From Selaginella moellendorffii (Eukaryota > Plantae > Lycopodiophyta): 64,000 nt of DNA. A model generated the notes under the pieces. The model ran no database searches. It was not told where the DNA came from and was given only the letters and a program-made list of their open reading frames with translations. The translations under genes were made by a program, and so were the position numbers. This document shows, piece after piece, positions 25,673-58,268 of this stretch (position 1 is its first letter; each line of letters opens with the position of its first letter). The stretch is taken from the NCBI RefSeq assembly GCF_000143415.4, contig NW_003314319.1, positions 710,365 through 774,364 of the forward strand, in the 5' to 3' direction.

Positions 25673-28367
25673 CAGCGTTTGACAAACCCTTTCACCTTCC
25701 AAAGCAAAAATCCTCCTCAGAGTTTAACCTCCAAGGATTTTTCAAAATTCCCAGGATTAAACCTTCTAATCAAAATTTTCTCAAGTAAAAATCCTTTTAT
25801 TAATAAAAACATAAGGTTAAACAAGCTTACAACTGTGAGAAAATTTGTCGATAGTGTGCACTTTTGGTCCACAACTTCATCAAAGTTAAACTTCTGAATT
25901 TCAAGACCTTCAACTGAAATCCTTACGAGAGGATCAATTGTTTCAATACTCATTTGATTTCTGTATTTGTTCTTGATCAAGTTTATTCTGCTAAAACCTC
26001 ACTCGCAACTTGCAATGCTAACACACTGCACCATCCCAATTTCACCAACTCGAAGCAAGTTTGGAAAGCTCTCTGCCCAACCTGTTTGACTATGTATGAT
26101 GCTCCACATATCAATAAAATTTCGTCCTTTCCATTCCTTTGAGGCAAGTAGCTTCCAAGTCAAATACTCTTCCATGAAGGCTGAAGGATCCACAATGCCT
26201 TTAACAAGAACTCCATCCACCTCTAAATGCCTTCCATAAAATTTTGCAAGCTCCCTTGCCTCTGTAATCCCAAATTATTTGTTTTCCTTGACAAGGATTG
26301 GCAAATTAACCGGAGCTAGAACCTGCATCTTGGAGAGTATCCCTGTGTCTTGTAGTCGTTGTCTAATATTTGCAATGAGAGCAAAAGTAAAGGAGATTTG
26401 AAACTGCATAGCTTCTTGAAGATCACTTCCATCTTCTGATCGGATCAATTGCATAGTTTTGTAAGCATCTCCTTTAACTGAAACTCTCAAAGCATGGAGG
26501 AAGCCATCCTTACTACCACCATCAGGGATGCATGGATATGATTTGTTATCCATGGGATTACCATTCAAATCAATCTCATCACTAATGTAATATTTGTTCA
26601 GCTTCACAATAGTCTCTCGGCACAAGGGTCCAACCATGGTGATGTCGATTAGCTTCTCTTGGAATTTCTGATTGAGACTACTCATCACCTGTAAAATATC
26701 AGCCAAAAAATGCAAGACATACTTGTTCTTGAGAGTTCTCAGCTTGTTGTAAAGTTGCAGCTTGCCACTTCGTTTGAAAAGCTCAGCTATTGGCTCCAAA
26801 CATTTGCAAAGCTTAGGAAAAGCCCCTCCACGACTTAGCCATCTCGTATCCTGTATGCACTACAGCTTAAGCTTGGCATGATCGTGTTCCATCTCAATTT
26901 CCATCAACTGAGCCAACCTTTTCAAGCTTTTGCTGAAGTAAGCTGCTACCTTATTCACTAGTTTATCAATCGTCATGCATTGTGTAGCACATTCTCCATC
27001 CCCATAAGCATCTTCCACACATAAATTGGCTCAATGTGCCATACAATGAACACTACTTAAGAAGGGATTAATCTCCTTTAGCCTAGTTGCTACCCCTGTC
27101 CTGCTACCAGCCATAACATTACATCCATCTGAACCAAAACCTATGAACCGCTGCATATCTAAGTTCCACTGCTTAAGCATATCACTAATGCAGTTAAAGA
27201 TACTTGCTGCACCACTATCACCAATGTTGACAATCCCCAAGTAGCTTGTCTTCACACAACCACATTCGATGTAAGTCACATAAAAAATAGTGCTGAAAAT
27301 AGATCAAATCGTAAGAAAACTAATTCATCCACCATCAATCCAAAATAAAGACTTTCCCTGACTTTTTGTAAAATATTTTTAACCATAACCTGAAGTGAAA
27401 CATGAACCATATTAGAATCAATTAACATGGTCTCATAAACATACCTTGTTAATAGAAGTTATCAGTCGTGAACAACCTTTGTCACTATCGTAATATCTTG
27501 GAATGTTCATCCCATTAAGTCGATGAAGTTCAATCAACTCTAGAAAACGAGTGAATGGAGCAAATCCTTTTGCAATATAATAAGCAGAACGAAATAACAC
27601 AAACACCCCTTGTTCAGTATGGTGTAGATGCTTAATTGTAACTTTTAAAATTGATTGTTACTTCCCACGACGCACGTCCTTAGCAAATACAGACTCCTTG
27701 TGATCTTCAGAGTTAGCATGACTGCGTAAGGCACTTTTTCGAAAATTACTACTACCTTGTTTGCCAAAAATATTCTTAGTTCGTGGATTTCCCTTGCAAA
27801 TCCTGCAAAACATTGTGCCTTCAGTCACATCAAATTCTAACTAACAGTAGCTTTGCTTCTAATGCTCCTTAAAATGCCCTGATGCTGCATCACCATCTAG
27901 TTCCTCAATATCATTCTCAATCTCTGTTTGCACAACAACCTTCCAAAAATTTAGAGTTAATTGCCTCCCAAAAGCAAGATCAGTAGCTAAAGGACACTTC
28001 TTTTTACCTGGAGGTAATTTTAGCATTCTACCATGTTTAATTAAGTAGCACGCAGTGTCTCACCCGAGTGGGCTCTCGCTCCGGAAAATGACCTACCTAC
28101 TCCGCTGACAGGTGGTATGTAGTATATTTTACTAACATCTTTAATACTAAGTTAAATGTACTTATATTTCAATTAATTAATATGGGTTAACAAAAAAATC
28201 TTTTTCTTATTAAAATACCCAAGATAAAATCCTTTTGATATCAAATAACCAAAGTTAAATCCTTATACATGATTTTTTTCCCGGGCCGTAGATCCTTCAT
28301 GGTTTGATCTGCCCAAGAGTTTTAAAAAAGTTCCAGGTTTTTATATGGAGGCGTTTGTCGACCACTG
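25673..28367 (-). mobile_element. hAT DNA transposon (ZNF862-like transposase, degenerate), 2695 bp, with TIRs and an 8-bp TSD
   Basis: The TSD CTTGACAT lies at 25665-25672 and 28368-28375. The imperfect TIRs are CAGCGTTTGACAAAC and (reverse complement) CAGTGGTCGACAAAC. Transposase remnants include 'GFGSDGCNVMAG...SVHCMAH', 'DTRWLS' and the dimerisation region 'SIASCE*GFS...KNKYRNQM', with stops. An empty site is present at about 55852-55859. Confidence 0.92.
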
Positions 28368-28439: not shown

Positions 28440-28932
28440 ATGGCCGGGGCTAGCTTCTTCCTGTCCTTCTCGTCTCTTTTCTCTGCCTTCTCAGGTAAGC
28501 ACATCTTTTGAGCTCGCAGCTCTCTTCACTAACAGCTGATCTGCAGGAATGCTTCACCAAAAGCGGCTACGCGCTCTTCATCCCAGGCTACAACATCTTC
28601 CCTGTTGCAGGCTGCAAGAAAGACATCGGGCCACCTTACAAAGACGGCTGCAGCCTCGCATTCTCCAGATCCACACTCGCAGCACGTTGCAAAGTACCGG
28701 GGAGTGGAGTTCTTCGTGGACAACGTGACCATCGCGCATCTGACCCTGGATGATCTCCAGTGCACGGTGAGCTTCCAAGGTCCCATCGACCTGGACCGGG
28801 GCTATGGAGACTACGCTTGCCGGGGGAACTGCATCCTTGTTTAGAACCTCTGGAAGTGTCCAGGACAAGGACATTTGCTCCAGCGGGTCCAAGAGACTCT
28901 GGTACCTGACTGCCAACCTGGAGACCACGTGA
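28440..28932 (+). pseudogene. Possible remnant of a small secreted Cys-containing protein gene (family not recognised)
   Basis: A hydrophobic first exon 'MAGASFFLSFSSLFSAFS' ends at a GTAAG donor. Protein-like segments follow in three frames: 'ECFTKSGYALFIPGYNIFPVAGCKKD', 'YRGVEFFVDNVTIAHLTLDDLQCTVSFQGP' and 'DKDICSSGSKRLWYLTANLETT*'. Confidence 0.35.
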
Positions 28933-28982
28933 CGACGTAAGAACTGTAGCATTTTAGCTGAAGCGGACAGGATTTTTTCATC

Positions 28983-31900
28983 ATGGAGGTGAGCGGCTTG
29001 GTGAGCCCGCTGTGTGTCTTGGGTCTGGACGCTGCCAAGAAGGTATGGGACTGCAATGCCAACATTGAAAGGCTGGAGAATGCCATGGCACCCCACATCC
29101 AGGCCAAGATCAAAGCTTTCAGTGAGCACAAGGAGCGAAATGGACCTGGCTTTATGTTCTCTGAAGCGGCCGAGGAATGCTTGGAGCGTGTCAGGACATG
29201 GAATGGCAGGGCGCAAGAACTCTTAGGGTCACGCAACAACAGGATCTGGAGCCCCGTTAGACGGTATGTTGTGCAGCATTTTTGTGCAAGAAGGCTGAAT
29301 TTATTTCTCCCTATAGGTACAAGCGGAGTGGCAAGATCATGGAGTGCATAAGCTCCTACCAGGATCTCCTGTCGCAGATCGAAAGTCACGGGCACGAGCT
29401 GAATGTGGACATTGCGAAGCTGGCAAAGAGGGCGACCAGCATCCAGGCCATGCTTAATAAGTTTCATACTCACAAGCACCGGAATCCAGAGTTCCGCTAC
29501 TCTGATGGAGCCGAGGAGTGTCTTGATCTTGTCACAAAATGGAACGACAAGGCGCAAGCACTGCTGGGATCACAGTAAGCATATACACTTGAGAGCTTTA
29601 ACAGTACAGCTAAATGATCTATGGATGTTTCACAGGGAGAAGCGTTATGGCGAGATCTCGGAGCTCATTCACAGCTACGAGGGCGATCTCCTTCCGATAA
29701 CTGAAAGGTACGAGCGAGAAGAGTTGAGAGTGATACAGCCGAGCACTAGCTTCGCCGTACGGAGTTTCCCGCAAGACAGAGGCCCTGCAAAAAAATATGT
29801 ACGGCGTGTTGTTCCTGATGCCATGTTTGGGGACCATGAACTACTGGATGAGGTAGTGAATGCCCTCTTGGATCCTGAAGCCCGTAGCAAATGGGTTGGA
29901 CTGTTGGGAATGGGAGGGTGTGGAAAGACCACCCTCGCAAGCTGCGCGCACAATGACCCGAGGGTGCGCCAGCATTTCCATGACAACATTGTGTGGATCA
30001 CTGTGAAGAAAGATGCTTCGGAGGACGATCTCAAGGCCCAGCTCCTCAACGCTCTTGAATGGGGTGAATTGAAAGAGAGGGCCAAACGAAGCCTTGACGA
30101 CATGCAGCACTTGGCACGCGATGTTGCTGGTGGTAGCCGTGTCTTGCTGGTACTGGATGATGTGTGGGACTGGAGCTGGGCAAAGGAACTGGATTTTATA
30201 GCACGGCCATCCTCTGGCCGGATCCTGGTAACAACCAGAAAGGAAGGCATTTTGCGCAGCCTGGATGCAAAGGCATTTCCTGTGCATCAGCTATCAATGG
30301 ACGAAAGCAAAAAGATGTTTTGGAAGTTTGCCTTCGGTGTGCATGATCCACAACCCAGTGACCCTGATGTTGTGGGACTTGCCAAGAAAATAGCTCGAAA
30401 ATGTGAGGGACTTCCTCTCGCTCTGGAAGTGATTGGCAGTGCCATGGCTGTCCACAGAAGTGAAGGGCCACATGTGTGGGAAGAACGATATAAAAGGTTG
30501 CACTTGTCCAATGATCCAGACGTTGAGAAGCAGATGTTCAAGCGCTTGAAGTTCAGCTATGACGAGCTGGGAAACTATGAGGGTGAAAAGCTGCAAGAGT
30601 GCTTTCTCTATGTGGCCGCATTCCCAGAAGATAGGTGGATTGGGTTTACTGAGTTGAGGAACTGTTGGATGGAGGTTGGGTCAGAACTCTCACCCACAGC
30701 GATTGTCAATGAACTGGAACGGAGATGCCTGGTGAAGATATCTAAGTCTTGGAGGGATGAAGAAGCTCCTGGTTATATAACAGTACACGATATGCTACGC
30801 AAACTGTGCATAAGAATCTTAAAAGGGAAGTACAGCCCACAGCAAGAGCACGAGAAGGGATGCCTGTTTGGATATGAGTGGACAAGTGGCATTCAGGATG
30901 CAACATTTGCTAAAGTCTCACTCATCTCAAAGAATGTTGGCAGCTTTCTATCCGATAATCATGTGCGAGATGCCTTGCTTATTGCTCACTCTATAGGACT
31001 TTCTAATGTGGATGACAGTCTTATCGATCACATACAAGGTGTCAAGGTATTGAGCTTGCTGGAATGCTATATGATCCATTTTATTCCAGAGAGCATATCC
31101 AAGCTGAAAAACCTTCAAGTGCTTGACATTCGACGAACAAAAGTGAGTCAACTACCAGATGCGCTTTTCAGCCTGACATCACTGAAATATCTAAAGTGTA
31201 CTGAATATCTTGAGTGTAACATTGCATTACTGCCCCAGCTCTCCAACTTGGAAGAGCTGGTGCTGAAGGTTGATTCAAAAGAGGACTCATCAGTTGTGGA
31301 TTTCACTGGAATTTCGCGTAAACTAAGAATTCTAAAGCTAAGAATAAGACAGGGTACAATGAAGGTGCCAGAAAGCATGGGGAAACTGGAGCACATTGAA
31401 ACATTGGTTTTACATGCAAAGACCATCGACTTTACCAGTGTCGTTGGGCTATGGGAACTTGTCAACCTAAGAACATGTGAAATTTCTGTGTTATCCGTTA
31501 GTAGAGCTCCCTGGAAGCGAATGTTTAAGAAATCAATCAGGCTTCGACGTTTATCCATCACTCGGGTAGAAGACAGTGAAAATAATGGTGAAAGCGTTGA
31601 ATGGTTGCAACTACGATATTTACGCATCCGTGATATTATAAACCTATCTTTGTTGCCCCATCGCCTAGAAACACTTGACATTGACTGCGGTGGTATCCAC
31701 TTGTTCAACCTGGATGGATCATTCCCACATCTTGGAGATCTGCGTCTTACGAATCTACACATTGCACAGTCAGAATTCAAGGATGATTTGGCTGCCAGTC
31801 TTACAAATCTGAATAAGTTGGAGTTTGAGCTAGCTCCTGATATTGAATGGGAGCACTTGCCTCTCTTTGTGGCACAGCTCCCCAATCGCCTCGAGTATCT

Positions 31901-32252
31901 GACATTAAAGGGTTGCATAAAGAGACTGTTGTTGCCAACCGAGAGTTCATCACTTCAGGTTAAAGATATTTTAGTATCGAGCAAGAAGATGCAAAATGAT
32001 TTCTTTGAGCCATCAGATCAAATGGCTGATATAGATACCGTGTGGTTGAGGTGTCATGAGAGTATCGTTCCATCGTCCATTGCATCACTGCCAGGTTTGA
32101 AACGTCTTAACATTTTACATAACGATGCACTGTGGTCCCACAATCACAGCGAGGCCGCATTTCCCAGGCTGGAATCGCTATCCTGCCCGAAAGACATGAA
32201 ATTTCCACCTTGGCTTGAGGACCGCCCCAAACTCGAGATACGTAAGTTTTAA
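28983..32252 (+). CDS. NLR immune receptor (NB-ARC-LRR) with a tandemly duplicated N-terminal helical CC/RPW8-like domain; intact, 1051 aa predicted
   Basis: Exons 28983-29263, 29317-29574 and 29636-32252 splice in frame (3156 nt). Motifs are the P-loop 'GMGGCGKTTLA', kinase-2 'LLVLDDVWD', RNBS-B 'GRILVTTR', 'CEGLPLAL', 'LKFSYDEL', RNBS-D 'CFLYVAAFPED' and the MHD variant 'VHDML', followed by LRRs. Confidence 0.93.
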
Positions 32253-32337
32253 TTTCCAAAGCGTTTTGGTATTCGAACGTCTGTTGTTTGACATATTTCT
32301 CCTCTAAATCAATATATACAAAACTGCGACCGCACCG

Positions 32338-35300
32338 CTACTCTTCCACCAGGAGAGCTTCGCCTCTCACGTCCCTGGCAACCTCTAGCACCTCGGGTTT
32401 GCTCCTTGTCAATTCCAATTCTTGTTCAGCTGCTACCTCGGTTTTGCGCACAGCAGCACCACCTTTGCCGGCTCTTATCCTCGCCAGGAAACCTCTCACG
32501 AGAGCCTGCATTTTCGTTGCAGCGCCCTGGACGTACACGGCCTGGATCCGCTTCGCACGCTCGATGCGCAGAGTGAGAGGCAACCCCTGCGTTAATCCGA
32601 GCCAAACGTTAGTATCAAAAGCTTGGAATAGCAGCTACTTACAGTTGGTCCGATCTTATACAGCGTCAGCGTTTCCAGCAGCTCCTTGAAAGGGACTCCT
32701 TTGTTTGGAACTCGAAAACTCATCACCTCGTACTCTATTCTCATGTCAGAACAAAGAAAAAAACGAGTGAGAGACAAAGAGCGATTGAGAGGAACACGCC
32801 AAACCATTGGGTCGTGTATTTGTAGTGCCGGCCCAACGGATCCCCGAGGGCATTTACAAATCGTCGGAGTTTGTGCATGCCAATGTATCCCGTAGCACTG
32901 GACGATTGTAAAGTTAGTTCCACAAGGACTTGAACGTAAGTAAGTGGCTTACTTGGGATCGAATGGTTCTTGGCTCCACAAGTTTCGATATGCTAACAGG
33001 TGCTCCGGCATGACTAGAGTTCTCGTTCACAAGGCCGAAACAGCATCCAGTATGACAGCCACAAACAAGTTCATGAATATGTGACTCCCGACCAAGACCA
33101 AGAAGGCGAAGATACTTCGGCCCTCTGGATAGCCACAATCATCGCCGAGTAGTGTTTTACCGTTGGTGCAGGCGGGTGCATCAATTGTGGTATCCATCAT
33201 AACACAAGACCAGTTATCAAGATTTGTATCCTGTAAAAGAAAAGCAAAACTGAAAGTGATAGAAAAGCCAAGCCTTTACCTGAAACACCGGGATGAAAGC
33301 ATTGACGAAAGTGCGAAAGTTGACAGACGGGCCAATGCAGGTCCCTTCCTTCATTGCACTGAAGAGTTGGAACGCCATCCCCGCGAACATATACATGAAA
33401 ATTGCGAGAAGAGCGAGTATCTCAGCTACAGTTGGCAAACAGATGAACATTGTTCGCATAATAACCTGTGCTCTCGCTACGTGAGGAATGATGCAGAAAA
33501 CTTGAGCAATGTAGGCAGTGCGGCCGACATAGCCCTTCACCGTTCCCTTCTTTCCCATGAGACCAATGGCGGCCATTATGGAGAGTCCAAACTCCATCTG
33601 CCGTGCAACCTCGTTCTTATAGACCTTCCACTGGAGAAAGGAAAAACCAGGTGGTCAAACAAAAAACAATCGAGAAAAAGATGAATGAGGTACGTCGTCA
33701 CCAAGGAACTTCATCACGGATAAGCAGGAAATATGTTGTAATCGCACAGTGAGCCATCTGACGCCGGTCCGAAACAACTGCCGACTGCCCAGCATAGTTA
33801 GTCGCAAGTAGCCCGGGGTAGCCAAGGAGTGCGAGGATCATGCACTTTTGATATGTCGGATTACGAATCAAGTAGAAGCACATCCCCCGGATGGGATTGC
33901 TTGGTCGTCGAGCCAGCGGAATAGCATAAGTTTTCTGGATGATACGGTTCATGTCCCTCCGCAGCTTCTGCCTCTCTGTGAGAAGAACTGCTCCAGAATT
34001 TTTTCCAAACTCGTTGATAAACACCCCGATGAAAACTCTGACGATATAAAATCCCCCGATACAGCAGAATGCCACGAAAAACAAGGCGTTGACAGGACTC
34101 GCGTTCCGAACAGGCTGGTGGTCTTCCCTAGTGATGTCCATGACAGGATACATGAAGTGCATCAGCCAGTTCTCGAAAGTGGAGCAGACGAACATACTGA
34201 GCAGGGCATTCTGAATGTTGTCGAAGTGGAAAACGTTATTAACCCAGGCTCGTGGAGCAAGGATGCCGATGTCATTAACATAGAGGCCGGTACAATATGC
34301 TCGGTGCGTGATTGTCGGGTCATTGCATTTCCAGAGAAGTTCCCCGAAACTGCTGCAGCCCGATGGTTCCAAATATCAGGAGAATTGAAAATGTGAAGAG
34401 AATAACCGACACAATTGCTGGAATAGTCCGAAAAAGATTTGATAATAATGACCTCAGTCCTGTAAACCGAACCACGAAACGAAATGGCCAAAGAGAAGTA
34501 AACGCACCGACGGTTGGTATGGAAGTTTCACCCTCAGCGTTATACTTCAGAAGAATAAGCGCATTGGTGACGAGAATAAACAAGTCCAAGATGTTGTACC
34601 AGTCACTCAGGTATGCGTCTGGCGCAAAAATAAGTCCCTGTGCAACGATCTTCATCAAACAGTCTAGCAAAAAGACCTGCTTCAAAACAATGTACAATGT
34701 CAGGCAAAATAAGATAAGCATGTGCTTACCACAAAGTTGATCTTATGCAGACTACAGATGAAATCGGGGACAATTATCGGCTCTCCATCATCTCCCATCT
34801 CAACTACGAGCCAAGTATTGATGACTATCCAAACTATCACAAACCACAAGTACGGTTTACTGCCGATGATCTTCCTAGACAGGATCCTTATCGTGTTGCC
34901 CTCTCCAAATAGAAGAAGCGACCCTTCTCGCAAGTACCACGGTCTCTGTATGGTTGTAAGAGTTCTCTCGAGCTCTTCGTACTCCGCAAGCTGGAAAGAT
35001 TTCCTGTTGCTAGAGGCCCTGCTTAGATTTCTGCCAATTTTTGGACTGCTGAGAATCTTGTCGAGAGTTATCACGGCATCTTGAAGTGCGGTCCTTGAAC
35101 CCCTCCTTTCACCGATATTAGAGAAAACCAGAAACCTGTAAAACTTGGGAAGAACGCCTGTGGCGCGACGGCGGTGCTTCAGAAAACTCTGCAGCTGGAA
35201 CGACCGACGATGGGGCCTCTAAAGCGGATCCAGTAGTACCCCCATCAGACTTAGCAGCAGTTACTGCCGGGCGTTGACGACCCTGGGACCCCTTCTCTCT

Positions 35301-38300
35301 TGGCCCGGTCTTACGTGATCTTTGACGTTTAACATGCGAGTTGTCATCCGTCGCAAACCTTTCATTTCTTCTACCGCACCCACAACCCAGCTTCTGCTTC
35401 TTGTGAGTGCCTGACTTTGCATTCTCCTGATTAACTTCATGTGCTCCATCTGAAAGAAAATAGTTCTTAGATGCAGTTCTCATTTTTTACCTTACTCACC
35501 CGTTGGATTCGCTTCTTCTGGTTGTCAGTAAGCTCGTTTCTCTCGAGCAAGACAGCAATGATAAGATTCATAACGACGTAAACTGTCACGACGAAGTAAA
35601 AGACGTATAGAAACGGCGCCACTACGCTGCAAACACGAATGCGTCAATACTAGAGATACGTGAGTGGCTGCTTACTTGTATTGAACTCCAGGTCGCAGGG
35701 AATTCCACATTTGGTTTACCCAGGATTCAGCCATGGTTACTGTAAACCAGACGAGCATGGCTTCCAGTATGGAATCATGATTTCCTCGCGGATACTCTTC
35801 AGGAAAGCTGTAATACTGCCCACTGTACAATTCCATGCTGATGATAGAGATTACTATGATAACCAGAAGGAAAAAGAAAAAAACCCCCGCCAAAGAGCCA
35901 ACACTTTCCATGCAAGTAGCCTGCATCACGTATTAAAATCAATCAAAGTGAATGCAGCAACTCACCACTACACTGGGATATTTTGCAACATACTTCTTCG
36001 AAGAGTAAAACCACCGCTTAATTCTTATGGATGTTAAATTTGGAAACGAATGAGAACTGAGTGCCACAATAGATGTCAAAAAAACTATCAAGTCCAAAGT
36101 ATTCATTCTTGAAAATTTCAGGATCAGACCAGAAGACAACATGAAAACAAAGAACTCACCATCGTCAAGAAAATCGCCAGGACCGTATGCTAGAAAGCGC
36201 AGCAGAAGTTCCCCGCTGAAAGCAAAAAGCATTACTGCTTGCAACCCGTCTGCATACAAAATTTATCATGCTGAACGAATAGAAAGGAAGTCGTGAAATG
36301 AATACCGAGCGTATGCAGCAACCGTTTTGACATCCCATACTTGAGGGACGATAAGAGCACGACGTTAATGGTGACACTGAGAAGTACTCCCCACTGAAAC
36401 TTGGGATGTTCGACGATGTCGCGGCTTTTTTCGGAAACTGTCAACGCTGCTTGAACTCCTAACGTCATACTTCGACTGAAAGACCTACTGGACCGCACTC
36501 TCATTGATCTGGCTTGAAGGGCAGTCCGCCGGGAGGTCCGTGTCCGATTTTATGCTCTCGCGACATTCTGCTGCACCTTTCTTGACCTGTCGAGTAAGCG
36601 GTTATACCATGGCATGTGCGAGTCGGCTTTGACGATATTGTCTTTCAGCACTTGTGCCATCATCGTTGCATCGTAAAAGGACACCGAGGTTCTACGGGCT
36701 TTCCTCAGCAAAGCCTGGATAATAACAGCTTAACTTAACCCAAATCAGTCGGTCATTAAAAACAAGTGTGCACCTGATGCTCTGATCGAACACGAAGAAA
36801 TACACCACTGATACCGGCGATGAAAACGTTCGCCAGGAAATATGTACCCAGAACAGTTAACGTCATAAAGTAAGTATCTGTGGTGCAATGGCTTGTGTAA
36901 GCAATAAAAGAAACAATGTCAACGCCTTACTGGCTCGCTCCCCTTCAGCATCCTTCACATCATGCATGACGAGGCTCCATCCTTCCAAAGTTATCACCTG
37001 CAGAGTGACCACTTTGAAGTGTGCTAAGGCGATAAGATGCTATGAAGTGACACAAACCTGAAACATGGTAAGCAGCGAATACCAGAGATAATCAAAAGTT
37101 GTCGCTCCATGGTTGGGATTCTCGTATGTCTACAAACAAAGAGATGGATAAGGAATGAGCTTATAGAAAAAACTCACCATACAGTTCTGAAAGGTAGACA
37201 TACGTAGCCGCCAGCAGCTTTTAGTCACAAAAGCGCATGGGATAAGCAAGTTGCTTGTCCGCTGTTCGAAAGCACCTGCCCAGGAGGATTTTGATTTCAC
37301 GTGATAAGAACTATCGAGATTACCTTTGATTCAACGAGTTTTGCAAGAACTGCGTGCCGAGTAGAGAATAGAAAACCAACAGAAAAAACGTCGAAAGGAT
37401 AACGTTTTGGAGAGGACCAACGCCCTTTTTCACGGCCGCCATGATGGTCTATTGTAAAGTGTTAACAATGCATAGATCAGAAATTTACAAACCATACTAT
37501 GACATCGGCAAAAAATATGATGTGCTTCAACGCTAGCAGGCCCCGAAACATGCGGAACACGGCTATCCACGCGAAAAAATCATGTGCAGTTATGCACCTC
37601 CCAAAGAGCTGGTGAAACACTTACGACCATCAAATACAAAACCTCAACATTACCAGGAATCGAAAACAATGACAAAGTCGAGCCTATTGTATGGATTCCG
37701 CATGTAGCAGTGACGACCTCTGATAAAACCAAGAGCCAAAATTCGTAACACCATTTCAATCCTACAAACACAAGTGTGAGGGGAAACCTCGAAGAGGGAA
37801 ACAACAATTACGTATAAAGCGCTGTGATGAGCCCGTCCAGGAAATCGATGTTGAAACTCCACACATGTGTCCATCGTTCATGCCTAGACCCCGCCATCGC
37901 TTGAAAGACAAGCACTGCCATACGGAGCATATGAGAAACACAAGAATATACTCGGCTCTCCTGCCACCATAGCAGGAAGGATGGTAAACTTCTATCCACG
38001 TACTGATTGTAGAGAAGCCTGAAATGTATAAGCGTGACGGGCTGTAGAAGCTCCAAATTCCAAGCTCCAGTCCCGACAGCACTCTGCCTCGCCTTTCTTC
38101 TTATATCTTAAACAGAACATAAGAACTCTCCAAAGTCGAAGGAAGTAAAGTTACCATGAGCCTCTTGATCGCAGTGTAAGCCCTCTTCCAGTTCTTGGTT
38201 GCCCGGGAATCGGGAATCGCTCGGGCCAGTTGATCCAGTGCGGCAATCAATGCGGCAGACGAAGACGATGACGCTGCTCGGTCACAATCCGGCGCTGCTT

Positions 38301-38400
38301 TGCTCAAGCCGTGAATCGGAGGCAGCCATGTCGGATGCGGAGCTATGAAATCGTGATCTTCTTGCGGGACGGGATCAGTGGAAGAAGTATTCGATCAATC
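32338..38400 (-). pseudogene. Four-domain voltage-gated Ca2+/cation channel (Cav-like) with a C-terminal IQ motif; copy A, 5'-truncated and frameshifted
   Basis: The four pore loops are 'VITLEGW', 'VTMAESW', 'CSTFENW' and 'DTNLDNW'. Other segments are 'RNPYNRLDF', 'HFDNIQNALLSMF', 'FIGVFINEF...LLTERQK' and the IQ motif 'ATKMQALVRGFLAR'. Lesions relative to the sister copies are a frameshift near 33720, a small deletion near 33040 and a lost splice acceptor near 32746. Confidence 0.85.
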
Positions 38401-39227: not shown

Positions 39228-41243
39228 GCGCCGTACGGAGTTCCCCGCAAGACAGAGGCCCTGCAAAAAAATATGTACGGCGTGTTGTTCCTGATGCCAG
39301 GCCATGAACTGCTGGATGAGATGGTGAATGCCCTCTTGGATCCTGAAGCCCCTAGCAAGTGGGTTGGACTCTTTGGAATGGGAGGGTGTGAAAAGACCAC
39401 CCTCGCAAGCCGCGCGCACAATGGCCGGAGGGTGCGGGAGCATTTCCATGACAACATTGTGTGGATCACTGTGAAGAAAGATGCTTCGGAGGACGATCTC
39501 AAGGCCCAGCTCCTCAACGCTCTTGAATGGGGTGAAAGGAAAGAGAGGGCCAGAGGAACCCTTGACGACATGAAGCACTTGGCACGCGATGTTGCTGCTG
39601 GTAACCGTGTCTTGCTGGTACTGGATGATGTCTGGGACTGAAGCTGGGCAAAGGAACTGGATTTTATAGCACGGCCATCCTCTGGCCGGATCCTGGTGAC
39701 AACCAGAAAGGAAGGCATTTTGCGCAGCCTGGATGCAAAGGCATTTCCTGTGCATCAGCTATCAATGGACGAAAGCAAAAAGATGTTTTGGAAGTTTGCC
39801 TTCGGTGTGCATGATCCACAACCCAGTGACCCTGATGTTGTGGGATTTGCCGAGGAAATAGCTCAAAAATGTGAGGGACTTCCTCTAGCCCTGGAAGTGA
39901 TTGGCAGTGCCATGGCTGTCCACAGAAGTGAAGGGCCACATGTGTGGGAAGAACGATATAAGAGGTTGCACTTGTCCAATGACCCAGACGTTGAGAAGCA
40001 GATGTTCAAGCGCTTGAAGTTCAGCTATGACGAGCTGGGAAACTATGAGGGTGAAAAGCTGCAAGAGTGCTTTCTTTATGTGGCCGCATTCCCAGAAGAC
40101 GAGGAGATTGAGTTCACTGACTTGAGGAAATGTTGGATGGAGGTTGGGTCAGAACTCTCACCCACAGCGATTGTCAATGAACTGGAACGGAGATGCCTGG
40201 TCAAAGATAAATAAGTCTTGGGATGACGATGATCGTATAATCGTACACGATATGCTACGCAAACTGTGCATAAGAATCTTAAAAGGGAAGTACGGTCCAC
40301 AGCAAGAGCACGAGAAGGGATGCCTGTTTGGATATGACTGGACAATTGGCATTCGGGATGCAACATTTGCTAAAGTCTCATTCATCTCAAAGAATGTTAG
40401 CAGCTTGCTATCCGATAATCATGTGCGTGATGTCTTACTTCTGGATAAATGTGAAGGACTTTCTAATGTGGATGACAGTTTTATCGATCACATACAAGGT
40501 GTCAAGGTATTGAGCTTGTGGTGATGCTCTAAGATGTGTTTTATTCCAGAGAGCATATCCAAGCTGAAAAACCTTCAAGTGCTTGACATTCAAGGAAATA
40601 TCTAAAAGGTACTACCCAGTGGATGCCGACGAAGTGTAACATTGCATTATTGCCCCAGCTCTCCAACTTGGAAGAGCTGGGGCTGAACGTTAGTTCAAAA
40701 GAGGACTCGTCAGTTTTGGATTTGACTGGAATTTCACGTAAACTAAGACATTTAAATCTAGAGGTACAATGAAGGTGCCAGAAAGCATGGGGACACTGGA
40801 GCATTGAAACATTGGTTTTATGGGTAGACAGCATCGACTTTGCCAGTGTCGTTGGACGATGGCAACTTATCAACCTAACAACATGTGAAATTGATGTGGA
40901 GTCCGTCAGCAGAGCTCCCTTGAAGCTAATGTTTAAGAACTCAGGCTTTAACAGTTTTACATCAATGGGGTAGAAGACAGTGAAAATAGTGATGACAGCT
41001 TTGAATGGTTGCCCCACCGCCTAGAAACACTTGACATTGACTGCGGTGGTATCCACTTGTTCAACCTGGATGGATCATTCACAGTTCTTAGAGATCTGGG
41101 TCTTACTAATCTACACATTGCACAGTCAGAATTCAAGGATGATTTGGCTGCCAGTCTTCCAAATCTAGAGTGTTTGTTCTTTAATCTAGCTCCTGATATT
41201 GAATGGGAGCACTTGCCTCTCTTTGTGACACCAATCGCCTCGT
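39228..41243 (+). pseudogene. NLR copy B, NB-ARC and most of the LRR (N-terminal domain deleted)
   Basis: Paralogue of 29752-31893. The P-loop is mutated (GCEKTT), a TGA follows 'DDVWD' (39639-39641), and there are frameshifts and deletions in the LRR. Confidence 0.92.
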
Positions 41244-41329
41244 AATTCTTTGGGCCTGATGATCATCGGGGGAATGAGTGGGAACCTACCTCATCGGAAA
41301 AACCAAAACAAGGTCCTGGAAGTAGGAAG

Positions 41330-41830
41330 AGGAAAGTGCAATGTGGGGAAACAAACAAGTGAGGATGCATGTGTAACTTCTCCATCAAAATGTTTGTGTT
41401 GTGTCTTCAAATGGATGTATTGTTGTATGGAACACGATGATGCTCAAGGAAGGATATGTCACGGGCCAGAACATGTTACAGCTCCTATCTCTGCCACTGT
41501 AGCTCCACGACTATCAAAGCAGAAGATCAAGTGGGTTGAAGAGCGTCTTTGGAGAGGCTTCAGTGCCGCACAGGTTTATAAGGAGCATCAACAAATTGTA
41601 GTTGCTACAGAAGCCCGGGATGCCTCTAAGTAGGGACGATTGCATGGTCTTTCGAGATGTGAAGAATATCTATGATAGAACTATCGGCGATATTTGGAAG
41701 CTGCACGAGGATGATAGTACTAGCGTGGATATGTAGACGGAGCAAAATCGTGAGAATGTGGTTTTTTATCAACGTCAGGTTGGAGAGGCAACTCTTATAC
41801 TAATGATTCAGACACCAACGCAACACAAAA
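41330..41830 (+). mobile_element. MULE/SWIM-type transposase-like fragment (degenerate)
   Basis: Segments read 'CHGPEH...APRLSKQKIKWVEERLWRGFSAAQVYKEH' and 'DVKNIYDR...WKLHEDDSTSVDM*TEQNRENVVFYQRQ...LILMIQTPTQ'. They resemble the region preceding the MULE catalytic domain; recognised from memory only. Confidence 0.5.
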
Positions 41831-41899
41831 CGTTGGGAACGAAACAGGACAGCTTCATAATTCCCAGTGGCCTCTGAAGGGGAAAACCGTCATGGCTTG

Positions 41900-42180
41900 C
41901 GATTCCCAGTGTCTAAGGTAACATGCATCAGGAGATGGCTTCAAGATTCACAGCAAGGGTTTCATTGTTCTTTTGGTGGCAGATCTTGCAGCGAGCGGAC
42001 ATCCTTTCGGCTCTAGCACTTGATTCCCAGTGTCTAGGGTAACCTGCATCAGGAGATGGCTTTACGATTCACAGCAAGGGTTCAGTCTTTTCATCTTTTG
42101 CAGTATTGTGGCTTCAGATCAGTTTCTAGGGCAACATGCAGCAGGAGATGGCTTCAAGATCACAAATTCAACAAGGGCTC
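41900..42180. repeat. Degenerate tandem repeat, about 3 units of 100-120 bp
   Basis: 'cagtgtcta(a/g)ggtaac(a/c)tgcatcaggagatggctt...attcacagcaaggg' recurs at about 41907, 42028 and 42120. Confidence 0.7.
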
Positions 42181-43270
42181 CGTCTTTTGTCTCTTTGGAC
42201 CGGCAACGGCATTTCTTTATCTACATCGCACATGTTGGGGGTGAGGAGCAGGTTTGTGAGGAATGAGAGCTGCGGGCAATCATGCTGATGCAGTATCTAG
42301 GGTTGATCTGGTTCTTCGATTTTGCTGGTTGGGGTTTGTGGGCACAAAAGGGATTCAGTTTGCACGGATTTTTCCACAGTTCAGCATCTTTCGACCGTAG
42401 TAATCTTCGACACATGATTCCACAGCCCTTAGGGTTTCTTCTCGAGCTTGGCAGTGTTTAGTGGAAATGCATCTCTGCATGGTGTTTTGGCAATCAGTAT
42501 TCGGTTGGAGCATGGTACGTATGTACAGCACGGCTGAACTAGCATCGTACTTTGCTTTTGGAGAACTCACATCAACAATCAATGATCTCAAGATGAACTG
42601 GAGGAGTTCGGGATCACACCAAGGGTTTGTGAGAGTAGCTTATCAGGTACTTCTTGCTTGTTTTCTTTTCCCTAGACTAGAGCTTAGGTGGTTAAAACAA
42701 GCCTTGTGAATTGATGTAAGCATACACAAATTATATGCAAAATACATACTGGATAACTGTACTTTTTTTATTATATCAATTTAGGATCTTAGAACATTTT
42801 TTGTGGTGACTAAGTGTGGGCTATAAAATCCATGGGAAGGAATCTAAATGGCATAGGCAAGGAACACTAATGTGTTAGATGTTAAACCAATTTTATTTTC
42901 TTTTGTAAGTGAGGAAGGCAGAAAACTTTTCATTTGTGGGCCATAGGAAGGATTGTGATGCAAGTCTCATGGGAAGTTTTGTGGAGATAAACCTAGTTGA
43001 CTTTGTTATTTAAAATCTGAGCTGGTTATTCACTCCAAGATTCAAAGAAAATGAAGTGTAGTAGGCTTGAATTTGATAATAAGAGTTGGGTATAGTGCTT
43101 TAGTAGGCTTGACTTTTACTGATTGATGGATGATAACAAAATGTATTAAAATGAATTTGATCAGTTACAAGAATATTCTACCAACTGCATGCCTGCTCCC
43201 TCTCTGTTAAATAGGGGCAAACTATTTTGATAAATTACAATAATTCAAAATAGAAGATATTACTCTTCTT

Positions 43271-47559: not shown

Positions 47560-48745
47560 GGCATCTTTCGACCGTAGTAATCTCGACACATGATTCCACG
47601 GATTGTACTTCGCTTTTGGAGAACTCATATCAACCATCAATGATCTTGAGATGAACTGGAGGCGTTCGGGATCACACCTTGATGCTGTACTTGGGGGTTT
47701 GTGAGAAAGGCTTATCAGGTACTTCTCGCACTTGTTTTCCTTTTCCTCAGCAGCAATTCCCCCCTTCGGGCATCTTTATGACATCCTCCACGGTACGAAC
47801 ACGTTTGATTTATGCTCGTCGGAAGTGGTGCTCCAGTTTGGGTTTACCAAAGTGGCAGTGTGGTAGGATTTTTGGAGGGGTGTTGCAAGTTTAGTGAGCT
47901 CTGAACATGTGTCTTTGTACATGGAGATATTCGCTGTGGTGGTGCATGAAGTTGTTGAAGACTTGGCCACAGTTTTTTTGAGAAGTTTACAACAGTATCC
48001 TAGTATCCTGTCGAAGAGCGGTAAAGGTCTGAAGTAACTTAGCTAAAATCCATAGAATATCTCGTCACTGTTTCTACGAGTGCAGTGTATCATTTAATTT
48101 TTATGGAATTATACACACTTCACTTGAACAGCAAACTAAACTGATTTGGATGACATTTCTCCAGCCTGAAGAACTCATCCTCGCAGCAAAACTCATCAGT
48201 GCTGAACACCAAGCCAGGGCTGTTGCAAGCAACTGGAGTCCTCAGATCAAAGATCAAAGATCAAAAGATTCAAGAACCTTTCAGACTATCTTCATTTCAA
48301 AAAGTAACGGTCGTGAGCTGATCAAAAGCAGCGATTGGTGAGCAAGCCATATCCACTGGAAAAACACTTATACTTCGGAGGGATACCATTAGCGACTAGA
48401 GCTTCGGTGGTTAAAACAAGCCCTGTAATTCTGAATTGACGTAAGCATACACAAATTATATGCAAACTATATACTGGATAACTGTACTTTTTTAATCATA
48501 TCAATTTGGGATCTTGGAACATTTTTTGAAGCCTAGTTGACTTTGTTATTTAAAATCTGAGCTGGTTATTCAGTCCAAGATTCAAAGAAAATGAAGTGTA
48601 GTAGGCTTGAATTTGATAATAGGAGTTGGGTATAGTGTTTTAGTAGGCTTGACTTTTACTGATTGATGGATGATAACAAAATGTATTAAAATGAATTAAT
48701 AGATCAGTTGCGAGAAGATTCTGCCGGCTGCATGCCTGCTGCCTG
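47560..48745. repeat. Patchwork local duplication of pieces from 42384-43197, 45540-45655 and 47404-47450
   Basis: Examples: 'gcatctttcgaccgtagtaatc' at about 42384 and 47561; 'cctagttgactttgttatttaaaatctgagctgg' at about 42992 and 48532; a thaumatin 3' piece re-occurs at about 48124-48240. Confidence 0.8.
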
Positions 48746-48766
48746 CCTGCCCCCGTCTAAGTAAGT

Positions 48767-49123
48767 GGTTGCATAAAGAGACTGTTGTTGCCAACCGAGA
48801 AGTCATCACTCAAAGCTCAAAAACTTTCACTATCGTGCAGGAAGATGCAAAATGATTTCTTTGAGCCATCAGATCAAATGACTGATATAGAAGACGTGTG
48901 GTTGAGCTGTGATGAGAGTATCGTTCCATCGTCCATTGCATTGCTGCCAGGTTTGAAACGTCTTGGAATTTTTAGGCCAAGCATGATACTTAACGATGCA
49001 CTGTGGTCCCACAATCACAGCCAGGGCGCACTTCCCAGGCTGGAAGGGGTAAACTGCCCGGAAGGAATGAAAATTCCACCTTGGCTTGAGGACCGCCCCA
49101 ATCTCAAGAGACATAAGTCTTAA
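48767..49123 (+). pseudogene. NLR copy B, C-terminal LRR fragment (continuation after the 7.5-kb insertion)
   Basis: 'GCIKRLLLPTEKSSL...MQNDFFEPSDQM...PPWLEDRP' matches 31911-32252. Confidence 0.92.
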
Positions 49124-49208
49124 TTTCCGAAGCATTTTGTTATACGAACGTCTGTAGTTTGACATATTTCTCCTCTAAATCAATATATACAAAACTGTGA
49201 CTGCACCA

Positions 49209-55462: not shown

Positions 55463-55910
55463 AGGTCAGGTTTTTGTTAGAATGATGTGATGATTCGTGC
55501 GTGATGTTTTGCCTGTGGTGGCCAGAGCGGTTTTGAAAATTAGGACGATAAGCGTTTATACTGTAAGTAGAGTTTGTTTCTTTTCTATCAAGGGTAATCG
55601 CGTATCCTTTTTCCAGTGCTCCGTGTTTTGTGTATTGGGAAAGCGTAGGAGCGTGTGCTATTTGTTCAAAGCTTTGATTGGTGTAAAGCATCGAACTAAT
55701 TGTTTCGTGTTAAGTTTCATTCAAGGTACATACAAGTCTTGGTTTGCTTACACTTGGAACTTTAAATTCTTCGCGCAGCTTCTGCTGTCGAGAATTGACG
55801 CAGACAAGTTCCACACAGGCTATGCTCTCAAATGATTCAAAGGCTCGCAAGATTGACATGCTATGTACCAGAGAGCCGAAACAACGGTTTTAAAAGGACT
55901 CCATTCCTAT

Positions 55911-58268
55911 TATGGAGTGCATAAGCTCCTAGCACGATCTCCTGTCGCAGATCGAAAGTCACGGGCACGAGCTGAATGTGGACATTGCGAAGCTGGACAA
56001 GGGGGCGACCAGCATTCAGGCCGTGCTTAACAAGTTTAGTTCCGCTACTCTGATGGAGCCGAGGAGTGTCTTGATCTTGTCACAAAATGGAACGACAAGG
56101 CGCAAGCACTGCTGGGATCACATTAAGCATATACACTTGAGAGCTTTAACAGTACAGCTAAATGATCTATGGATGTTTCACAGGGAGAAGCGTTGTGACA
56201 AGATCTCGGAGCTGATACACAGCTACGAGGACGATCTCCTTCCGAAAATTGAAAGGTACGAGCGAGAAGAGTTGAGAGTGATACAGCCGAGCACTAGCTT
56301 CGCCGTACGGAGTTCCCCGCAAGACACAGGCCTAACAACAAAATATGTACCCCGTATTGTTCCTGAGGCCATGTTTGGGGGCCATGAGCAACTGCTGGAT
56401 GAGGTGGTGAATGCCCTCTTGGATCCTGAAGCCCGTAGCAAATGGGTTGGACTGTTGGGAATGGGAGGGTGTGGAAAGACCACCCTCGCAAGCTGCGTGC
56501 ACAATGATTGGAGGCAGCATTTCCATGACAACATTGTGTGGATCACTGTGAAGAAAGATGCTTCGGAGGACGATCTCAAGGCCCAGCTCCTCAACGCTCT
56601 TGAATGGGGTGAAATGAAAGAGAGGATTTTATAGCAGGGCCATCCTCTGGCCGGATCCTGGTGACAACCAGAAAGGAAGGCATTTTGCATCCGGATGCAA
56701 AGGCATTTGCTGTGCATGAGCTATCAATGGACGAAAGCAAAAAGATGTTTTGGAAGTTTGCCTTCGGTGTGCATGATCCACAACCCAGTGACCCTGATGT
56801 TGTGGGATTTGCCAAGAAAATAGCTCGAAAATGTAAGGGACTTCCAGTGATTGGCAGTCAGAGGTGAAGGGCCACATGTGTGGGAAGAACGATATAAGAG
56901 GTTGCACTTGTCCAATGACCCAGACGTTGAGAAGCAGATGTTCAAGCGCTTGAAGTTCAGCTATGACGAGCTGGGAAACTATGAGGGTGAAAAGCTGCAA
57001 GAGTGCTTTCTCTATGTGGCTGCATTCCCACACAAATTAATTGAATTTAGTTCCTTGAGCAAATGTTGGATGAAGGTTGGCTCAGAACTCTCACCCACAG
57101 CGATTGTCAATGAACTGGAACGGAGATGCCTGGTCAAGATAGATAAGTCTTGGGGGTATGAAGAAGCTCCTGGTTATATAATCGTACACGATATGCTACA
57201 CAAACTGTGCATAAGAATCTTAAAAGGGAAGTACGGTCCACAGCAAGAGCACGAGAAGGGATGCCTGTTTGGATATGAGTGGACAAGTGGCATTCAGGAT
57301 GCAACATTTGCTAAAGTTTCATTCATCTCAAAGAATGTTGGCAGCTTTCTATCCGATAATCATGTGCGAGATGTTATACTTATGGATGAATGTATAGGAC
57401 TTTCTAATGTGGATGACAGTCTTATCAATCACATACAAGGTGTCAAGGTATTGAGCTTGTGGCGATGCTCTAGGATCCATTTTATTCCAGAGAGCCTTTC
57501 CAAGCTGAAAAACCTTCAAGTGCTTGACATTCGAGGAACAAAAGTGAGTCAGATGCGCTTTTCAGCCTGACATCACTGAAATATCTAAAATCTACTTAAT
57601 GGACGCCCATAAAGTGTAACATTGCATTACTGCCCCAGCTCTCCAACTTGGAAGAGCTGGAGCCGAGCCTTGATTCAAAAGAGGAGTCATCAGTTGTGGA
57701 TTTGACTAGAATTTCACGTAAACTAAAACTTCTAGATCTAAGAATGACACATGGTACAATGAAGGTGCCAGAAAGCATGGGGACACTGGCGCACATTGAA
57801 ACATTGGTTTTACATGCAAACAACATTGACTTTGCCAGTTTCGTTGGGTTATGGCAACTTGTCAACCTAACAAAATGTCTAATTCGTGTGAGAACCGTCA
57901 GCAGAGCTACTTGGAAACAAATGTTTATGAAATCAATCAAGCTTCAACATTTTTCCATCGTTGGGGTAGAAGACAGTGAAAGTAGTGATGACAGCTTCGA
58001 ATGGTTGCAATTACGATATTTAGACATCCGTGATATCATAAACCTATCTTTGTTGCCCCACGGCCTAGAAACATTTTTTAATTAAATGCAATCGTATCCA
58101 CTTCTTCAACCTGGATGGATCATTCCCAAGTCTTGAAAGGCTGTGGCTTACTAATCTACGCATTGCACAGTCAAAATTCAAGGATGATTTGGCTGCCAGT
58201 CTTCCAAATCTGAAAGAGTTGCACTTTTGGCTAGCTCCTGATATTGAATGGGAGCAATTGCCTCTCTT
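55911..58268 (+). pseudogene. NLR copy C (first N-terminal repeat, kinase-2 region and C-terminus deleted)
   Basis: Paralogue of 29339-31866. The P-loop is intact, but there are deletions and frameshifts at about 56625, 56845 and 57550. It is fused to the channel 3' end at about 58265. Confidence 0.92.

Follow-up and report, generated by a model that had tools for sequence, protein, structure and literature searches.

In plant resistosomes the CC is the pore-forming end, and in those resistosomes that are known the funnel is formed by its first helix, alpha1. A MADA/MAEPL-type motif in alpha1 is needed for cell death triggered by CNLs. Variants found in nature, such as that described below, bear on the extent to which the geometry of the CC tolerates change. 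Two NLRs of the liverwort Marchantia polymorpha, Mp3g09180 and Mp3g09210, are predicted to be tandem CC-CC-NLRs; their CCs were each assayed, and an HR was obtained with no CC other than the internal one of Mp3g09210 (Chia et al. 2024, PMC11218826). Non-angiosperm CC-NLRs have been placed in a "Cbl-N" group (Castel et al. 2025, PMC12512272). A G10/ANL clade was not found in Selaginella, and two Selaginella NB-ARCs have been used as an outgroup (Lee et al. 2020, PMC7756659; New Phytol 229:532).

The gene considered here is found in a stretch of 64,000 nucleotides of the Selaginella moellendorffii genome (contig NW_003314319.1), referred to below as the window, and all positions are those of the window. 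Nucleotides 28983-32252 constitute an intact CC-NB-ARC-LRR immune-receptor gene of S. moellendorffii, the features of which are collected in Table 1. The limits of exons and introns were determined by direct reading of the DNA and by a script that threads the public protein P0001 onto the genome. This protein, which carries the NCBI name "probable disease resistance protein At1g15890" (Selaginella moellendorffii), is 100% identical to the translation of exon 3 (29637-32249, + strand), and its length of 1051 aa equals exactly the sum obtained from the splice model, i.e., 93+1+85+1+871. Analyses of the whole N-terminus were made with P0001; the exons were otherwise searched singly.

Table 1. Features of the S. 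moellendorffii NLR gene (positions in the window)
Feature	Position	Strand	Basis or remark
NLR coding region, 3 exons, 1051 aa, protein P0001	28983..32252	+	DNA reading and protein threading
Exon 1	28983-29263	+	
Intron 1	29264-29316	+	53 nt, GT..AG, phase 2, splits R94 codon
Exon 2	29317-29574	+	
Intron 2	29575-29635	+	61 nt, GT..AG, phase 2, splits Q180 codon
Exon 3	29636-32252	+	
Helix alpha1 region, residues 1-24, single copy	28983..29054	+	ZAR1 alignment covers model 3-120
Unit 1, residues 25-118 (alpha2, alpha3, alpha4), intron 1 inside	29055..29389	+	Unit comparison
Unit 2, residues 123-205 (alpha2', alpha3', alpha4'), intron 2 inside	29402..29711	+	Unit comparison
NB-ARC	29841..30563	+	Pfam PF00931, E 5.5e-39
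P-loop GMGGCGKT	29907-29930	+	
Kinase-2 LLVLDDVW	30144-30167	+	
GLPL motif (EGLPLAL)	30405-30425	+	
MHD-type VHD motif	30783-30797	+	Just downstream of the Pfam NB-ARC match
Leucine-rich repeat region	31029..32249	+	Pfam LRR_14, E 7.4e-17, and other LRR families

The gene is transcribed, as seen from spliced contigs in public runs that are only tentatively taken to be RNA. The joint 29574->29636 (GT..AG) is found in contigs of four such runs from four studies, and the junction 29263|29317 is represented by two loose ends in run X1, with letters matching 29320-29334 and 29252-29262. Comparison of the contigs of the four runs with positions 28800-32400 showed that they cover the gene from about 28918 on; none of these contigs on its own joins both units and the NB-ARC. 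The two junctions had been proposed previously on the basis of the DNA letters (hereafter the sequence-only reading), and the spliced contigs, together with the length of P0001, bear out both of them.

The NB-ARC harbors a P-loop, kinase-2, GLPL and an MHD-type motif and is followed by C-terminal LRRs, as is characteristic of a CNL. Its best match in the PDB is an RPW8-NLR (8zf0, E 3.7e-31), with ZAR1 nearly equal (1e-29); overall it is about equally near to RNLs, ZAR1 and NRCs, where the matches of the ZAR1/G10/Sr35/NRC type have E-values of 1e-23 to 1e-29. This NB-ARC of the CNL/RNL type directly follows an N-terminal helical region, which is the position expected of a CC.

Within this N-terminal region, a part of the sequence is present twice. 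The translations of exons 1 and 2 are 49% identical over 59 aa (E 3e-16), and when whole units are compared (P0001 residues 20-120 with 121-215), the identity is 42% over 97 columns (E 4e-19). An alignment of 25 paralogue units showed that unit 2 is shorter by 10 residues of the alpha3-alpha4 loop, just before intron 2. Once the 10-residue gap is set upstream of the intron, both introns, each in phase 2, are found two codons ahead of the conserved K-R of helix alpha4. The exonic DNA of the two units can still be aligned while the two introns no longer align, and the duplication is therefore old. The duplicated block is composed of the alpha2-alpha4 codons and the phase-2 intron within, which corresponds to about 330 bp of genomic DNA and about 83-94 aa.

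The alpha1 region (residues 1-24) has no counterpart ahead of unit 2. The sequence found at that place is the tail of alpha4 of unit 1, which in the AF2 model is part of one helix that runs into alpha2'. The order of elements in the protein is alpha1 - [alpha2 alpha3 alpha4] - [alpha2' alpha3' alpha4'] - linker - NB-ARC - LRR and, because alpha1 is present once, two complete four-helix bundles would exist only if the end of alpha4 in unit 1 served as the first helix of unit 2. Inspected by eye, alpha1 is hydrophobic and rich in small residues, with spaced leucines; the pLDDT is low at its start. The sequence-only reading correctly recognized the tandem duplication of an exon+intron module, as well as the fact that the ORF track hides the duplicated units. 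Its "double four-helix" layout holds for the presence of two homologous units, but it is only alpha2-alpha4 that are doubled, with a single alpha1.

The duplication is not confined to this gene. About 20 paralogues were identified on five S. moellendorffii scaffolds, and both units are found in at least 13 full-length paralogues, i.e., the duplication is the norm in the NLR family of this species and is shared by most of it, rather than being a feature of a one-off gene. Threading of six two-unit genes onto the genome revealed, in all six, two phase-2 introns at the same codons, and the two-unit, two-intron layout was seen in paralogues on four scaffolds. The most divergent paralogue, P0021 (45% identity), harbors one unit, in which a single phase-2 intron occupies the corresponding position, and is distinguished from the two-unit paralogues by a clean 87-aa indel. 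The unit of P0021 has 25 states that are shared only with unit 1 and 13 that are shared only with unit 2, and these are interspersed along the sequence, which rules out a simple unit1/unit2 recombinant. Its single unit may represent the ancestral state or the result of a later loss of unit 2. The duplication predates the expansion of the family.

Comparison of subclades using the Nei-Gojobori method (82-94 codons per region for the two units) yielded dN/dS ratios of 0.31-0.54 for unit 2 and 0.63-0.85 for unit 1. The corresponding values for the NB-ARC are 0.39-0.52, with 0.24 in one pair that has just 79 mappable codons. Unit 2 is conserved and not decaying, i.e., it is under purifying selection as measured over these short regions, and both copies of the unit are retained under selection.

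The fold of the N-terminal region was addressed using AF2 with alignments that are shallow (14 close paralogues). The model of residues 1-120 (pLDDT 81, pTM 0.68) displays helices at 9-53, 61-84, 91-106 and 108-119. Among 48,161 PDB chains, the highest-ranking match to this model is the CC of the ZAR1 resistosome (Z 10.1 over 103 residues with 18% identity, where model residues 3-120 are superimposed on 5-134 of the chain in 6j5t), followed by the CC of the wheat G10 resistosome (9h2l, 36-141; Z 9.2, rmsd 2.3); Z-scores of 9-11 are within the range that helical bundles reach by chance. The best 50 structural matches do not include an RNL chain. In a Foldseek search, the highest TM-scores in the list were those of the NRC3, ZAR1, Sr35 and NRC2 resistosomes, at E >0.5. 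The helical-bundle fold of an N-terminal CC is thus seen in the AF2 model, at Z-scores that are modest for helical proteins. A model of the first 240 aa (pLDDT 72) displays helices at 7-53, 61-85, 91-106, 108-149, 157-178 and 184-210. Here, residues 2-120 again gave ZAR1 as the best match (Z 10.7), residues 120-212 matched only generic three-helix bundles, and the model as a whole resembles EzrA/spectrin-like repeats. A Foldseek search with the 240-aa model gave nothing at E <0.2, and a shape search of the ESM Atlas returned only unrelated bacterial helical proteins.

At the level of sequence, the relation to known CCs is faint. Neither unit gave a Pfam match when the single exon translations were searched at E up to 1. 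With whole N-termini, the commonest Pfam family was Rx_N (PF18052), which was found in 12 of the 14 paralogues with a best E of 8.9e-6 and with alignments that are colinear with helices alpha1-alpha3; all these matches fall below the curated threshold (20.8-25.2 bits in the members shown, with a gathering cut-off of 27.7; P0001 reached 13 bits and P0021 gave no match), and an Rx_N match above that threshold, by which a CNL would be recognized, was not obtained. In the group-B paralogues the Rx_N match is located at about 107-175, corresponding to profile positions 8-70 (E 1.7e-5 to 4e-4), and P0004 displays a weaker match at 4-70, corresponding to profile positions 2-62. Weak Spectrin and EzrA matches were also seen. 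Neighbours identified with a language model belonged to Rx_N clusters in 28 of 30 matches. The hhalign alignments to a set of 22 angiosperm Rx_N CCs and to two N-termini from Capsicum were colinear without being significant (probability <5% for the 22-CC alignment), and the unit-1 alignment, when used as a profile against PDB sequences, gave no matches except chance ones to SNAP-25. Residues 1-215, used as the query in a word-based comparison with 5.8 billion proteins, matched nothing but paralogues. A profile HMM built from both units and alpha1, and run exhaustively against 1.84 billion representative proteins, recovered three S. moellendorffii clusters and a repeat artefact, P0121, and nothing else; Cbl-N/MAEPL relatives in other non-flowering plants were not among the results. 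A Cbl_N match is likewise absent from the Pfam families listed (25 of 35), and inspection by eye revealed neither an evident MADA motif nor an evident EDVID motif.

Taken together, the predicted fold and the sub-threshold Rx_N matches lead us to conclude that the N-terminal domain is a CC of the Rx_N/ZAR1 kind that has diverged strongly; it may also resemble RPS5-like CCs. The sequence-only reading had suggested a signalling domain that is CC-like or RPW8-like. The former is in line with the fold and the Rx_N matches, but has no match above a curated threshold. The latter finds no support in the data: RPW8 (PF05659) was not found with the translated exons (E up to 1), with P0001 residues 1-240 at E up to 10, or among the paralogue N-termini in the 25 commonest of 35 Pfam families (E up to 10), and the best 50 structural matches do not include the CC of an RNL. 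A practical consequence is that this CC is missed by Pfam and probably also by NLR classifiers, and the Selaginella NLRs may be classified as if they had no CC.

How a receptor with such an N-terminus would operate can be considered in terms of the known resistosomes. The sequence-only reading had suggested that unit 2 could be an autoinhibitor, a spacer or a decoy. We propose, with a probability of about 0.5, that alpha1 and unit 1 form the executioner and that unit 2 serves beside the NB-ARC as an adaptor or rigid spacer. The receptor would act as a canonical CC-NLR where activation leads to oligomerization of the NB-ARC, and the part acting on the membrane would be unit 1 with the N-terminal alpha1, of which there is one. 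Unit 2, with neither a free N-terminus nor an alpha1 of its own, would form a rigid, spectrin-like three-helix element adjacent to the NB-ARC. It would probably have taken over the surface used for docking of the CC to the NB-ARC-LRR, and would increase the distance between the ring and the executioner bundle by one module.

The most serious alternative, which we nevertheless hold to be unlikely, is a "double-decker" arrangement of two interlocked CC bundles. Here, the C-terminal half of alpha4 in unit 1 and the whole of unit 2 would make up a second, masked Rx_N-like four-helix bundle that either clamps alpha1 at rest or is a latent executioner, which acts once cleavage or a transcription start inside the gene has released it. 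The Rx_N matches of the group-B paralogues extend over the alpha4 tail, alpha2' and alpha3' as though these formed a complete CC, and fit this arrangement at least as well as they fit a spacer; however, their scores are below the gathering cut-off. The continuous AF2 helix 108-149 is reminiscent of helix 9-53 (alpha1+alpha2) in unit 1, but the alpha4 tail displays no evident likeness to alpha1 when the sequences are judged by eye, and an internal helix lacks the free N-terminus that a funnel requires. Two gene models, P0005 and P0014, begin inside intron 1 and would release exactly the internal bundle, unless they are annotation artefacts resulting from intron retention. The HR elicited by the internal CC of Marchantia Mp3g09210 alone offers a parallel (PMC11218826). 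If true, this arrangement would add a regulatory layer that is undescribed for resistosome-forming NLRs. A role of unit 2 as an integrated bait, i.e., as a CC-core decoy for effectors that target CCs, the binding of which activates the receptor, is improbable. Conservation is higher in unit 2 than in unit 1, and NLRs are known in which an additional domain has been integrated between CC and NB-ARC, e.g., the HMA domain of Pik-1; however, unit 2 is found in all of the at least 13 paralogues and not in one sensor, and to our knowledge the known integrated domains originate from host targets, never from the signalling domain of the receptor itself.

Two further alternatives concern the nature of the repeat. 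The N-terminal region could be a lineage-specific, spectrin-like helical repeat that is not homologous to CCs and has another role, e.g., in scaffolding or localisation. Such an origin would account for the restriction of the profile matches to S. moellendorffii, for the lack of matches above threshold in Pfam, PDB sequences and hhalign, for the weak Spectrin/EzrA matches and for the unrelated helical proteins returned from the ESM Atlas. We regard it as improbable, as the two top-ranking structures of 48,161 are CCs of CC-NLR resistosomes with the same N-terminal position, no Pfam family was matched by the paralogues as often as Rx_N, the language-model neighbours are Rx_N clusters, and a location immediately before a CNL/RNL-type NB-ARC suits a CC. 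A doubled unit that arose in the assembly or annotation deserves mention since the S. moellendorffii assembly is composed of two haplotypes and its NLR clusters include fragments. This explanation is very improbable: at an identity of just 42% the units are old and are not a collapsed or duplicated read pile, the layout and both introns recur in paralogues on four scaffolds, and four studies provided spliced contigs that extend across the junctions.

A variant of the CC that is natural and selected has been fixed across most of the NLR repertoire of an early-diverging vascular plant. It offers a ready-made test of the distance from the ring at which alpha1 can be placed, of the use of a CC core as a spacer or clamp, and of the remodelling of NLRs by exon-plus-intron duplication. 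An incomplete search of the literature returned no published description of this CC duplication in Selaginella. The partial duplication is unusual, but the class of tandem CC-CC-NLRs has a precedent in Marchantia (PMC11218826).

The resemblance of the N-terminal region to EzrA and spectrin repeats is that of shape only: 178-185 residues could be superimposed (Z 8.8-8.9) and a continuous helix connects the bundles, at an rmsd of about 5 A and with no relation in sequence. The likeness to ZAR1 (6j5t), wheat G10 (9h2l), Sr35 and NRC2/3 comprises an N-terminal CC ahead of the NB-ARC-LRR and the predicted fold of residues 3-120. The Selaginella CC differs from these in having no significant CC sequence similarity and an extra copy of alpha2-alpha4 before the NB-ARC. 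With Marchantia Mp3g09180 and Mp3g09210 it shares the occurrence, in an NLR of a non-flowering plant, of two CC-type modules ahead of the NB-ARC. The modules of the two plants are taken to be unrelated, and their duplications independent, as the profile had no matches beyond S. moellendorffii. As the Marchantia proteins are described, each has two CC domains (PMC11218826), whereas in Selaginella three helices are doubled and alpha1 is single.

Synonymous divergence between two paralogue subclades of the NLR protein P0001, the product of the main gene, differs along the 5' part of the coding sequence. For unit 1 of the duplicated coiled-coil (CC) block (residues 25-118), dS is 0.17-0.26, about half of that for unit 2 (residues 123-205; 0.44-0.64), and it is also lower than that for the NB-ARC domain (0.31-0.39); the values derive from small numbers of codons. 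Because the unit-1 value falls below both of the others, the data hint at gene conversion, or swapping of the 5' end, among paralogues.

The NCBI models of two paralogues on other scaffolds, P0005 and P0014, place the first methionine within intron 1 and then read through the 3' end of the intron into exon 2, i.e., the predicted proteins lack helices alpha1-alpha3 of unit 1. The counterpart of this start in the window is found at 29282-29316, where the matching frame is open from 29282. These models are either intron-retention artefacts or represent transcripts whose product would consist of the internal module (the alpha4 tail of unit 1 with unit 2) released from the sequence that normally precedes it.

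Two further NLR copies are found in the window (see the table). The second copy, which displays frame changes, starts only at the linker that precedes the NB-ARC domain and lacks CC units upstream; residues 2-223 of an annotated 577-aa protein, P0019, are 97% identical to 39540-40205. The third copy is a 5'-truncated pseudogene that has retained unit 2. It starts within helix alpha4 of unit 1 and therefore lacks exon 1. Its alpha4 is interrupted by an in-frame stop, the reading frame shifts within unit 2, and NB-ARC has a gap.

Features surrounding the main NLR gene in the window
Feature	Position	Strand	Remark
Short ORF, C-x2-C ... H-x5-H pattern	27658-27828	-	just upstream of main NLR gene
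ORFs like voltage-gated ion channel, IQ-like tail	32338-38400	-	directly 3' of main NLR gene, opposite strand
Second NLR copy	39230-42270	+	likeness to P0001 from residue 220 onward
C-terminal LRR fragment, separate	48715-49126	+	
Third NLR copy	55876-58272	+	

Ion_trans genes also adjoin the NLR at the locus of another paralogue, P0004, and because genes or ORFs of ion-channel type lie beside an NLR on both scaffolds, the two scaffolds are syntenic, as haplotypes or through block duplication. The annotated P0004 model spans 13.6 kb, and near its C-terminus the protein carries the segment 'PSDQMTDI..IPSSIASL' three times. When the protein was threaded onto its locus, the alignment stalled at residue 330, and the model is therefore probably a composite, its pieces joined across a gap or across another gene. 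The DNA around the short upstream ORF is AT-richer (GC 0.39), and the ORF itself resembles a transposase remnant with a zinc finger of the BED/TTF type.
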